Shown: piece after piece, positions 30,100 to 40,794 of the stretch | How the letters are laid out: every line of letters starts with the position of its first letter | Position numbering within the stretch: the stretch's first letter is position 1 | DNA from: Ramazzottius varieornatus | Lineage: Eukaryota > Animalia > Tardigrada | Assembly (NCBI GenBank): GCA_001949185.1 | Contig: BDGG01000014.1 | Coordinates: 248,001 to 312,000 of the forward strand | Length of the DNA stretch: 64,000 nt | Direction: 5' to 3' | Translations under genes and position numbers: made by a program | Notes under the pieces: model-generated | The model's database searches: none | What the model saw: only the letters and a program-made list of their open reading frames with translations | Told to the model about the DNA's origin: nothing

Positions 30100-31240
30100 G
30101 GATTGCAGAAAAAGCCTGAGAAACGATATTGCAGTACAGACAGGCATGGCAGTTCATCAAGATGGTCTCTACTAAATAGTAAACAGCAACTGGCTGGGAG
30201 TATACTCATAGGTTCTTTTTGAAGTCCAGAAAAGCAAGCTTGTTGACGGTATTTCCAAACCGGCCATACGGGTATTCCATGCTTGCTGGTCTACGGTGAC
30301 TCTTGCTCTCCCGAAAGGACTCAGCAAGTACCTGGACATAGGGTAGGCAGGACATAGGGTAGGCAGGAGCAACTTCCGTCCGGTCTGTTGAATGCAGCTC
30401 GTAGGTCGGTCAGGAGTCCACTCTCGCGAAGAATGCCTGCATCGTGCCTACATCTTTCCATAGGCCCAAAGAGATGCCCGATTACCCCGTTCGGATACAT
30501 TACAGACTGGAACTTGATACCGTGTTGTCGTTTGTGGCCGGTGAAAGCTGCCTTTTGACTTCGAGAGGGACGACAAGTAAGTCTCATGGTCCCGTCGATG
30601 AACCTAACACAAGTTTCCAGCGGAGCTCCCCGTGCTGTGATCTTGGAAGCAAAGGTCGTAAGGGTGTTTCCGTTCATCCAAGGGTGAATTATAGCTGCAA
30701 AACACCAACCGGAAATGACCGAACAAAGTGAAATAGGATCTGGTATCGCACGGGCTACCCGCTTGTCTTTTCCCGCAGCTTACCTCTCAACAAATGACCA
30801 TGTTCTCGGTGAATCAACATAACGGTGTGATTAAAAATCCTGCTGAAGGAAGGAGCAGACCGCTTCATCAGTCGTTTGCTTTCGAAGAGTCGGTTAGGTA
30901 CGTTCCATGACTCCCTTCGCGATATACCCCATAAGTCTGACATGACTTGCGACAATCCTTATGTGAATTTCAACATCGACTTTCTGCGTTGGAATCCTGT
31001 GGTAAGCGAGGTGGACGGTCATCCGACTTGGAAGAAACCCCATGCGATAAAGAGCGGATAGGTTGTCATGTAAGGAACTGTCATAATTCATAACTTGACA
31101 AGTATTATCAATACGTTGGACGATACTACCTACCGATATGACATCACTATCTTCCAGTTGGAAGTAAGTGATAAAGTTAATGACAATCAGTGATGTGCTG
31201 CCGAAGCGCACGTCTGCTAGAGCGTGGCAAGCCAAAACGC
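30100..31240 (-). mobile_element. Degenerate PIF/Harbinger (HARBI1-like) DDE transposase
   Basis: GAPLETCVRFIDGTMRLTCRP...GHKRQHGIKFQSVMYPNGVIGHLFGPMERCRHDAGILRESGLL. Frameshifted, with a short tandem duplication (GGACATAGGGTAGGCA x2) near 30334-30365. No TIRs found. Confidence 0.85.
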
Positions 31241-34990: not shown

Positions 34991-35248
34991 AAAAGGTGAA
35001 GTTGCAGTTCGACTTGCTCAACAAAATGCTCACCTACATACAGCGGTTCCTCGCGAATAACGGCGGCTGATGCCTTGACGCATTCGTTCTTCACGGGACC
35101 TCGCAAGATCACGCGACAGCCGAAGAAGCGACGTGTTGGAAGAAGAAAGACCGCTGGTGCGCCAAAGACCAAGAAACTAAAGACGGCGAAAAAATGTCGA
35201 TCAGTTTCGGCGAGAAAGTCCAGATCAGTCTCCGCCAGACAGTCGTAA
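34991..35248 (+). pseudogene. Orphan CMGC-type protein kinase C-terminal fragment with a basic tail
   Basis: FDLLNKMLTY / frameshift / RITAADALTHSFF matches kinase subdomain XI, followed by RQPKKRRVGRRKTAGAPKTKKLK. No upstream kinase subdomains are recognisable. Confidence 0.5.
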
Positions 35249-35480
35249 AACTATCAAGTTTATTCTACATCGAGCCAGCCGCTTACAGTCTGTCTTATCC
35301 TCATTTCACGAGGCCTTCCACAAGACACATTTGTACACCAAAGACCGATAAAACATTCAAATTTGTAAAAGTCGGGCAGTGAAACGATGCCAGCATCAGA
35401 CTGAAAACACCCGTTCTTCTAAAGGTACAGTCAACTTATGACAAAAAACACAACGTTCGTTGCACGCTACAGTAGCTAGG

Positions 35481-37001
35481 CTATTGCTGATCGTTCTCGG
35501 TATCCTTGGTCCACTTGACTCGGATGGAGATGGCCTTTGGGTCGAGTGAGTCAGCCATGGTGGAGAACTTGTCGCGAACGTTCCTGTCCGAAATGGCAAC
35601 TTTACCTGTCAAAAAGAAAGCCATTCGGGTCAAGAACTGTGAAACGCGCAAGGACAGCGAAAGAGTTCAAAGAAAATAGAGGAAGACTTTGCTTACCGCT
35701 CTTGATTTCGCTGGCGAACTTTCCCCGCTCGCTGATGAGCTTCTTGGCCACCTTGCTGATGGTCCCGTACGGGCTGCCTTCTTCGGTCTTGGCTTCAGCT
35801 GCGCTGTCCCAGCCGGTGGTCTCGTCATCCAACAGCTCTTTGGCGATCTTCCAGCCTTTCCTCAGCACACTGAGCCATGCCCGAGCCCTGACTTCTTCGT
35901 CATTGATCGCTGCGCCCACCGCCGAACCGCCAACAGCTTCAGCGGCCCCACCGGCCAATTTCTTGACAAACTTGGCGGAGGTCTTCTCGACCAGGACACC
36001 GGTATCACCTTGCGTATCCTCAGAGTCGCGGAACCACTTCTTGACGACTACCTTGTCGGGACGTCCGTGACGATGGCGATGGTGATGACGATGGTGATGA
36101 CGATGTCGGTGCCTGTTCCAGTCTTGGAGAGGAATGCCGACGGAATCTTCCGCCACGATCGCACGACGACTGGTGGGACCTTGAAGAGCTTGGAGAATGT
36201 TGAGGACTTGACGCAGCTTGGCCAGGTTCTTCTCCGAAGGGTCGGACTTGGCGACATCTTGGAGGTAGCGGCCAATGTCCAGCAGGATCTCCACCGTCAG
36301 GCTGTTGAAGGTGCGGTACAGTTCGACCACGTCTTTGGCTTCAGCCTGGGCTTCGTCGCTCTGCAGATCCTCCTTGATGAAGCGTTGAACCTCTGCGATA
36401 GACAATACATACTAATCGAGTCACAGACCAAAGCATCAACCAAGGAAAGGAAGGAGGGCACTGCGAGCTTTGCCAGTCTCTTACCGGCAAAGTGGTTGGA
36501 GACATGGCACATGCGGCTGTAGTCTTGGAAGACCTTCAGTTTGTCGTTCCACTTGAAGAAGCGGGCTTCACATCCGCATCGATCGGCCAGGCACTTGGCA
36601 TCGTCCATCAGCTGGCAACGAGTCTTCTCGCAGGCGTTGGGAAGGCAGACTTGTCCGACCGATGGATCACAGCTGCTGATCGGCAAAGAAGGCGCAGAGA
36701 AAGAGGTGGAATTGGATGAGACGCCTTCATCGCCCGGACGGTAGTAACAGCGGCCTTCCGCCCACGATAGATCGTTCTTCTGGCAGTACATTCCTCCACA
36801 GCAGTTATCTCCCTGACAGGGAGCATCTACGTGCAAACCAGAGTGAAAACACGCACAACGAGGACAAAGCCGAAGTCGAGCAGATTATTCGAAAGTTGAC
36901 GGAGGGGAAAGTTTATGCTCACCGTGTCCTTGGCATGCTTCAGCACACTTCAGCCAGCTTCCCACAGCTAGACAGGCCAAGACGACGACCAAGACCTTCA
37001 T
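35481..37001 (-). CDS. Secreted 413-aa modular precursor (knottin + Cys-rich + His/Arg-rich + cationic amphipathic segments); candidate antimicrobial polyprotein
   Basis: Exons 37001-36923, 36826-36485, 36392-35697 and 35605-35481 have phase-1 GT-AG introns and sum to 1242 nt in one open frame. Signal peptide MKVLVVVLACLAVGSWLKCAEA is followed by CQGHDAPCQGDNCCGGMYCQKNDLSWAEGRC. The gene model is well supported; the function is inferred. Confidence 0.8.
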
Positions 37002-37111
37002 GGCGAACCTCCAATCAAAGACCAAGAAGACACACGATACTATGCCTGGAAAGAAGTCTTTCAGCCGAGCTTGAAAGTTATATCAACTGTGGGGACTCGG
37101 GAGAGCCTACG

Positions 37112-37148
37112 ACTGAACCAAGAAAGACTTCTTCCACTGCTATTTATA
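37112..37148 (-). promoter_or_regulatory. TATA box + initiator of the secreted precursor gene
   Basis: On the minus strand, TATAAATA (37148-37141) lies ~30 nt upstream of TCAGT (37116-37112), an arthropod-type Inr, about 110 nt before the ATG. Confidence 0.6.
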
Positions 37149-37346
37149 CCTTCGCTGTGATTTTGATCAAGCGTGGACATTCAACTGGACCAAGTCCGGC
37201 TGCGAGTCCGGACGCTCGAAAGCCCAACCAGGCCGCATCCGTGTCCATTTCTTCAGTTGCCTGCTTCGACGTTTCTTTATTGTACTGAACTCTGAAAGGT
37301 TTCAAGAAAGAAAACCATGCAATCAGGCAGCAAAACCCACGAAGAA

Positions 37347-40794
<3,448 letters not shown>

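Follow-up and report, generated by a model that had tools for sequence, protein, structure and literature searches.

A gene on the minus strand of a 64,000-nucleotide (nt) stretch of the genome of the tardigrade Ramazzottius varieornatus (contig BDGG01000014.1, positions 248,001 to 312,000; this whole stretch is termed ‘the window’, and positions are counted along it unless a contig is named) is expressed and encodes a 413-amino-acid (aa) knottin-fusion protein with a secretion-type leader. To judge from its sequence, the protein is best placed, as a new member with a fused knottin, in an uncharacterised family of secreted proteins found here in tardigrades only, and it probably acts as a defence or feeding effector. 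That it would work outside the cell in this way, and largely as one chain, is given about an even chance. The analysis establishes the gene model and its transcription, the relationships within the family and, for a paralog, a predicted fold.

The coding sequence is divided between four exons, which are separated by three short introns that all begin with GT, end with AG and lie in phase 1. The coding part of exon 1 (36923..37001 (-), 79 nt) carries the start ATG (37001-36999), a signal-peptide-like N-terminus and the first cysteine of the knottin, and ends in phase 1; exon 2 (36485..36826 (-), 342 nt) encodes the remaining knottin, a Ser-rich linker and a module with eight cysteines (8-Cys module); it is followed by exon 3 (35697..36392 (-), 696 nt) and by the coding part of exon 4 (35481..35605 (-), 125 nt including the TAG stop at 35483-35481). 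Intron 1 (36827..36922 (-), 96 nt) divides the knottin between Cys1 and Cys2, and introns 2 (36393..36484 (-), 92 nt) and 3 (35606..35696 (-), 91 nt) lie on either side of exon 3; the codons split by the three introns are GAT, GAG and GGT. With exon borders read from the sequence, the exons add up to 1242 nt (79+342+696+125), that is 413 codons and the stop; the length of 413 aa is this sum of exon lengths, and the joined mRNA was observed in public RNA contigs only. A preliminary description of this DNA had proposed four phase-1-spliced exons over exactly this span, and both the model and the composition read from it are borne out, as the exon translations contain a hydrophobic N-terminus where a signal peptide was claimed, a six-Cys knottin, eight more cysteines, a helical region and the His/Arg tract RHRHRHHHRHHHRHRH. 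The list of open reading frames (ORFs) breaks the gene into pieces of 46, 179, 267 and 56 aa, as had been stated. Long ORFs on the plus strand run across the gene antisense to its exons, and are disfavoured by the splice-site orientation of the RNA contigs.

The stretch around the gene is contained in 20 public sequencing runs, in 14 of which about 0.72-0.76 of its words are found, a share that fits spliced RNA. Contigs of four runs (X1, X5, X9 and X14) were aligned to it. X5, X9 and X14, which stem from three different studies, each hold one contig of ~1.5 kb with all four exons, from which exactly the three predicted introns (intron 1 in all three contigs) have been removed at the joints 36923/36826, 36485/36392 and 35697/35605, the last of which was reported with a cut of +4. 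Since the ends of the joints read CT..AC on the plus strand, the transcript is assigned to the minus strand. The four-exon transcript that had been predicted is thereby seen in single contigs from three studies, and its exons do not lie in separate transcripts. Run X1 covers the introns and resembles DNA or unspliced material; it differs from the window at positions 35401, 35443 and 35458 of the 3' untranslated region (UTR) by two C>T changes and one missing base, which could reflect strain or allelic variation, or reads that stem from the duplicate of the gene described below. The 5' UTR (37002..37106 (-)) has an approximate 5' end that was taken from contig ends at 37092-37106, and the promoter that had been noted holds as well, with the TATAAATA box at 37148-37141 (37141..37148 (-)), upstream of the transcript start and 35-56 nt upstream of the 5' ends of the RNA contigs. 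The 3' UTR was followed to 35300 (35300..35480 (-)), the limit of the compared stretch, and the RNA contigs continue 10-25 nt past it.

The larger part of the protein belongs to a family that can be recognized across tardigrade genera. Searches of the animal's own genome covered an assembly of 55.8 Mb in 200 contigs, and all searches were run per exon or with real full-length paralogs as the query. The 8-Cys module (36507..36671 (-)), with its invariant core D-R-C-G-C-E-A-R-F-F, is the conserved N-terminal half of the family domain and has own-genome matches of E 1.6e-29 to 5e-12. Directly behind it follows the conserved helical core (exon-3 aa 1-75, 36166..36390 (-)), which has the pattern N-x-L-x-x-E ... 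Y-L ... P-x3-N ... L, finds own-genome matches of E 7e-13 to 1e-8 and ends in the basic pair R74-R75 (36171-36166). A Trp-containing amphipathic cationic helix (exon-3 aa 169-187, 35830..35886 (-)), preceded by E-E-V-R and followed by D-D-E, and the C-terminal motif G-x-F-x-x-E-I-x-S-G-K-V-A-I-S-D-x-N-V-R (35571..35766 (-), running from late exon 3 across intron 3 into exon 4) complete the set; as in the rest of the family, the Trp helix ends L-L-D-E/D, and homologues of it were found in P0002, P0003, P0005, P0009, P0011, P0033 and P0035. In RvY_17070 and RvY_17084, two paralogs, the modules follow in the same order, and the alignment to the window gene extends over the 8-Cys module, helical region, Trp helix and C-terminal motif. 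About 45 kb separate these two genes (C14:1360381-1361193 (+) and C14:1406062-1406863 (-), loci L010 and L011), which point in opposite directions just as the window gene and its duplicate do. What is probably a fragment of a pseudogene, at C2:1045919-1046603 (-) (L006/L022), repeats the C-terminal half in degenerate form, with the Trp helix, the motif and the last exon at 39-74% identity and with in-frame TGA and TAA stop codons.

A HMMER profile search of 1.84 billion representative sequences returned 60 proteins. Those members with both the Cys module and the helical core whose source is named are all from tardigrades, namely RvY_16545 and RvY_16521 of R. varieornatus, BV898_00116 and BV898_06983 of Hypsibius exemplaris and three LOC entries of Paramacrobiotus metropolitanus; the remaining members of this type, including P0005, are transcript or genomic contigs without a named source. 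Outside tardigrades the 8-Cys module finds weak matches (E 6e-7 and weaker) in uncharacterised multi-repeat proteins of rotifers and in a hyalin-like protein of a brittle star, for the matching part of which Pfam reports no domain. Pfam searches of the window gene, exon by exon, gave nothing above the cut-off (the weak matches were to Disintegrin at E 0.55 and, owing to the His tract, to ZrgA at E 0.022), and those of the paralogs gave nothing; the ESM Atlas held no usable match for RvY_17070 or exon 3, and a profile of the Cys module had 0 matches among PDB sequences. As aligned here, the 8-Cys module, helical region, Trp helix and C-terminal motif are one conserved, tardigrade-only family, and all four parts are shared with RvY_17070, RvY_17084, RvY_16545, BV898_00116 and LOC129582775. 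The first two of these relatives also share the knottin; as most family members are without it, the knottin fusion is taken to be a later addition within Ramazzottius. The window member differs from its relatives in ~90 extra residues between the helices of the bundle, which include the His/Arg tract and a Gly/Ala-rich stretch, in a second insertion before the C-terminal motif, in the absence of a basic site after the knottin and in the absence of the C-terminal Cys pair that several relatives possess. In RvY_16545 the first two cysteines of the module have both been lost, which suggests that they pair with each other.

The predicted fold of a paralog points in the same direction. AlphaFold2 (AF2) modelling of RvY_17070 (P0002) with a 28-row family alignment gave a predicted local distance difference test score (pLDDT) of 84-95 over residues 81-306 and a predicted template modelling score (pTM) of 0.61; a first run with an 8-row alignment was unusable (pLDDT 44). 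The model shows short strands in the Cys module and then long helices, of which the Trp helix spans residues 246-268 (pLDDT about 86-90). Residues 1-77, which comprise the knottin and linker, are of low confidence, with the knottin part below a pLDDT of 50. Foldseek found nothing in the PDB at E <= 0.001, and a wide search with VIA-align matched residues 178-306 to many unrelated up-down helical bundles (Z up to 10.3, a value that the tool's own note places within reach of helical models by arrangement alone). RvY_17070 is thus modelled as a single compact domain of Cys module and helix bundle, and the predicted fold gives no functional clue. The proposal of the preliminary description that the gene packs independent effectors of different classes was not upheld, as the alignments show one conserved tardigrade-only family and the model of RvY_17070 shows one confident unit.

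The knottin at the head of the protein is Alo-3-like. It covers 36747..36935 (-), broken by intron 1, has the spacing C-x6-C-x4-CC-x4-C-x11-C, and its six cysteines, in the order C-C-CC-C-C, stand directly behind the signal peptide, the CC, C and C columns being invariant in the knottin alignment. The hydrophobic leader of the paralogs and of knottin-only proteins stops just before the Cys of codon 23 (36935-36933 in the window gene). In the own-genome search, the window knottin was 75% identical to small two-exon genes for a knottin only, which are clustered on contig 13. The same knottin is found in RvY_17070 and RvY_17084, both of which have an additional intron inside it that is absent from the window gene, and in RvY_16177 (P0049), which joins it to a GH19 chitinase domain (PF00182 at E 1.7e-8); the knottin-only cluster and the knottin-GH19 gene lie at C13:~508100-513600 (loci L014, L016 and L017). 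When the knottin-only paralog P0030 was compared with the PDB, the best match was ALO3 (1Q3J), over the full length and with all six cysteines aligned (E 0.027), a statistically borderline link to an antifungal knottin family. The profile of the knottin alignment matched only spider knottin toxins in the PDB (E 0.08-0.44), and the HMMER profile search described above also recovers multi-knottin proteins of Thrips palmi and many knottin-only proteins of 48-92 aa. P0010 (Thrips palmi XP_034247553), P0008, P0017, P0020 and P0064 contain three to six tandem Alo-3-like knottins with Pro/Ala-rich linkers between them, and proteins of the P0010 type are, by their layout, true knottin polyproteins outside tardigrades.

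Beetle knottin peptides of the Alo-3 type are made as a signal peptide followed by a mature peptide of 34 residues (PMC10743862). The knottins described here agree with Alo-3/psacotheasin-type insect knottins (1Q3J) in the six cysteines C-C-CC-C-C from the first residue after the signal peptide and, in the knottin-only paralogs of this genome, in the core G-S-Q-G-N-C-C ... C-x-K ... W-x-x-G-x-C. The insect knottin is a free peptide of 34-36 residues, whereas the window knottin continues into a protein of ~350 residues, has a shorter Cys2-Cys3 loop and is without the Gly and basic end of the paralogs. PG-K, PG-KK or PG-RK closes the knottin-only products, and in the large paralogs RvY_17070 and RvY_17084 the knottin is followed by G-RKRR; such ends usually mark a peptide for cleavage and for amidation at its C-terminus. 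In the window gene, Y-Y-R-P-G-D-E-G follows the knottin, with ~350 more residues behind it, and the basic site of the paralogs has been lost; as R-P-G-D-E-G replaces the basic end, the window knottin is not set up for release in the way that those of the paralogs are.

The part of the protein that varies most lies between the conserved core and the Trp helix, and contains, in this order, the His/Arg tract, a short Lys-rich stretch and a Gly/Ala-rich cationic stretch. The tract RHRHRHHHRHHHRHRH (exon-3 aa 93-108, 16 residues, 36067..36114 (-)) lies inside the hypervariable insertion and is a coding 12-nt tandem repeat (Tandem Repeats Finder: period 12, 2.8 copies, 95% matches, 36072-36105). It is not present in the paralogs; P0005, the closest relative, has ~230 aa of His/Gly/Ser repeats at its place, and RvY_16521 has an Arg/His-rich tail. 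On these comparisons a basic or His-rich low-complexity insert recurs in the family and its sequence does not. The Gly/Ala-rich stretch (aa 137-163, 35902..35982 (-)) is preceded by E-K and followed by D-E-E, and is moderately amphipathic, with a hydrophobic moment of 0.48 (calculated in a sliding segment from aa 136). Relative to P0005, identity is 63% in the helical core and 38% in the C-terminal part, and no alignment is possible in the middle.

Taken together, these features would fit a gene assembled by exon shuffling, with introns that are all of phase 1, in which an Alo-3-type knottin placed right behind the signal peptide was linked, with no processing site in between, to a domain family specific to tardigrades. 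The domain part would consist of the 8-Cys module, then an amphipathic helix bundle, then the C-terminal motif, and the hypervariable insertion with its His/Arg repeat and Gly/Ala-rich cationic stretch would sit between the helices of the bundle. The protein would act outside the cell, mainly as one chain or after a limited cut at the R-R that closes the helical core. The knottin would serve as a target-binding or antifungal module, as is presumed for the knottin-GH19 fusion of the same genome, and the His/Arg tract and amphipathic helices would supply interactions with surfaces, metals or membranes. In plant class I chitinases (hevein plus GH19) a Cys-rich binding module is likewise fused to a chitinase, and RvY_16177 shows that in this genome the knottin is placed in the same manner at the N-terminus of a larger secreted effector; the window gene differs in that, according to Pfam, it carries no enzyme domain. 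Secretion, target, activity and any processing of the window protein are inferred.

Several points weigh against this account. The link to Alo-3 is statistically borderline and was obtained with the paralog P0030, and the window's own knottin exon is without any Pfam match; likewise the fold prediction was made for RvY_17070 and not for the window protein, and the bundle matches are generic. In addition, the enrichment of a cationic-acidic pattern in the family tails, as well as relatives with two or three Gly/Lys-rich stretches, is left unexplained by a simple folded domain, and the relative P0033/P0079, which has such stretches before and within the Cys module, points to released peptides.

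It is from these last points that the alternative which survives best draws its strength, namely that the protein is a precursor which is cut after secretion into free effectors (the knottin and the His/Arg, Gly/Ala-rich and Trp-containing amphipathic peptides), with the 8-Cys module and helices as its pro-domain; we regard this as unlikely, at somewhat above one-fifth in our weighing. The pattern in question was defined as [D/E]-x(0-2)-[K/R], followed by 14-32 net-cationic residues and [D/E][D/E], and was counted in the tails of 16 family members. It was found 15 times, against 6.3 +/- 2.3 in composition-preserving shuffles of which none (0/1000) reached 15, although the rows are related and the enrichment does not come from independent events. 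Three units of the pattern stand in tandem in the window gene. Gly/Lys-rich amphipathic stretches occur two or three times in P0007, P0009 and P0011, relatives in other genera, and the relative P0033/P0079 has two near-identical Trp-containing amphipathic stretches, each ending D-E-D/N, one before the 8-Cys module and one in its last loop, a placement that recalls an autonomous unit or a mobile peptide cassette. In most members the helical core closes with a basic cluster (R-x-x-R, K-R or R-R) and acidic residues after it, and some processing in the family is likely, given that paralogs carry G-RKRR after the knottin. The gradient of conservation relative to P0005, from the core through the cassettes to the middle, is also what a conserved pro-region with variable effectors would be expected to show, and no described tardigrade antimicrobial peptide was found in the literature searched.

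The borders of the cassettes in the window gene speak against cutting at these places. K-R, R-R and R-x-x-R are all missing there: before a cassette stands a single E-K or E-E-V-R, and behind it nothing basic; the sole R-R is that at exon-3 aa 74-75, and a dibasic or furin-type site is lacking after the knottin as well. Conservation of the Trp helix and the C-terminal motif extends across genera, and the model of the paralog places both, with confidence, inside one domain. Only aa 169-187 are strongly amphipathic among the cationic segments of the window gene (hydrophobic moment 0.71, net +4, matched by 10/2000 shuffles), and the last 122 residues of exon 3 are nearly neutral, with 22 K+R against 20 D+E. 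The preliminary description had seen several short cationic segments, each ending at an acidic spacer; the association of cationic stretches with acidic ends stood up in the pattern count, with the qualification that one segment is strongly amphipathic and the tail is near neutral. Amphipathicity was considered as a marker of released peptides and rejected, as the third helix of the conserved core is equally amphipathic and cationic (up to 0.93). The conservation and the predicted fold contradict those parts of the polyprotein reading that call for modules independent of one another and for a cut at every acidic spacer, as far as alignments and the model of a paralog can be extended to the window protein.

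Known precursors offer two points of comparison. Those of frog skin peptides and of spider latarcins resemble the window protein in having a signal peptide, cationic amphipathic stretches with acidic stretches between them, and an acidic residue with Arg/Lys in front; the ‘complex’ precursors of the latarcin type use E-x-x-R processing motifs. They differ in that no homology exists, and in that the stretches of the window protein are unlike one another, are partly conserved between genera, fall in a predicted fold and have no dibasic sites. Cathelicidins combine a conserved, Cys-containing pro-domain with a variable C-terminal peptide, and the architecture of the window protein is similar in its conserved disulfide-type N-terminal part (63% to P0005) and its faster-evolving cationic C-terminal part (38% or unalignable). 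No relation in sequence or fold to cathelicidins was seen, the C-terminal motif of the window family is conserved, and cleavage is putative here. A wider form of the precursor idea, which is a doubtful proposal with about one-fifth of our belief, would make the whole family precursors of the first tardigrade antimicrobial or cytolytic peptides, built from a disulfide-rich pro-domain and a variable number of mobile amphipathic cassettes, each bounded by an acidic residue with Lys/Arg at its front and by D/E-D/E at its back; a knottin and a His/Arg tract would have been added by capture in Ramazzottius, so that several classes of effector would come from a single gene.

A further alternative accepts a secreted protein and denies it a direct antimicrobial role; it could instead be a structural or matrix protein (of the cuticle, eggshell or feeding apparatus), bind or transport metal through its His tract, or be a factor of the stylet or salivary glands that opens food cells. 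We place this, at about one-fifth, slightly behind the cleaved precursor and also consider it unlikely. In its favour, neither the Cys module nor the helix bundle has a link to any defence family in Pfam, Foldseek, VIA-align or PDB profile searches; His-rich or basic low-complexity inserts recur in the family (P0005 and RvY_16521); the near-threshold Pfam match of exon 3, below the cut-off and caused by the His tract, is to the zinc-uptake family ZrgA; and a knottin-GH19 fusion could equally digest fungal or algal walls. It is opposed by the nearest characterised relative of the knottin, which is an antifungal peptide, and gains little from the matches of the 8-Cys module to rotifer repeat proteins and the brittle-star hyalin-like protein, which are weak. 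Least probable, and by a wide gap in our estimate, is a secreted stress protectant whose amphipathic helices would protect membranes or proteins as the animal dries out, in the manner of the tardigrade heat-soluble proteins: the restriction of the family to tardigrades, its amphipathic helices and a word depth of 603 for one X14 RNA contig (contig depth being a poor measure of expression) would suit it, but the protein has 14 disulfide-type cysteines and a confidently folded domain, unlike the known tardigrade protectants, which are disordered, no similarity to any such family was found, and nothing ties the knottin to desiccation.

The product of the gene is represented in public protein sets by a fragment at most. 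Exon 3 is matched by a single database protein of 151 aa, titled ‘hypothetical protein RvY_16695-1, partial [Ramazzottius varieornatus]’; no protein of 147-467 aa containing exon 3 was found in the protein collection searched, and word-based protein searches gave matches from the same species only. The full-length product therefore seems to be unannotated in these sets. An inverted, gene-sized duplicate lies at C14:321142-322869 (L009:1058-2588), 9.1-10.9 kb past the end of the window, and matches window positions 34999-37267 at 98.3-99.7% identity. In it, a run of 50 N (C14:321792-321841) stands in place of 589 bp, and the model of RvY_16695-1 begins exactly where the duplicate resumes after this run, so that RvY_16695-1 appears to be derived from the duplicate and not from the window gene. 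The duplicate was considered as a shortened paralog that would show modular loss of the Cys, helix and His part; this was rejected, as the missing 589 bp correspond to the 50-N assembly gap.

Directly upstream of the gene, on the same strand, lies a multi-exon gene for an NSUN2-type RNA cytosine methyltransferase (37350-40523 (-)) with RsmB/F methyltransferase, Pre-PUA and PUA domains. An ORF at 30324-30677 (-) matches the Harbinger-type transposase DDE_Tnp_4 (E 6e-7) and is probably a transposon remnant, and a PPP5-like fragment lies at 32.4 kb of the window. None of the neighbouring genes in the window looks functionally linked to the knottin-fusion gene.

In a comparative study of tardigrade immunity from 2020, it was left as an open question whether tardigrades have novel antimicrobial peptides (PMC7056985). 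Literature searches found no later description of tardigrade antimicrobial peptides, and a search by locus tags found no mention of these genes. If the product is an ordinary folded secreted protein of undefined role, the interest of the gene would be limited to the evolution of tardigrade gene families. Parts of the canonical arthropod immune pathways are missing in tardigrades, and the gene and its family are concrete, expressed candidates for secreted tardigrade effectors; proteomics that relies on public protein sets would miss the product, as its full-length form seems to be absent from them. The Alo-3-related knottin has been reused in three ways in this genome, as a free peptide, as an add-on to a chitinase and as the head of the window protein, and to this the family adds a lineage-specific Cys/helix domain with peptide-like cationic stretches.

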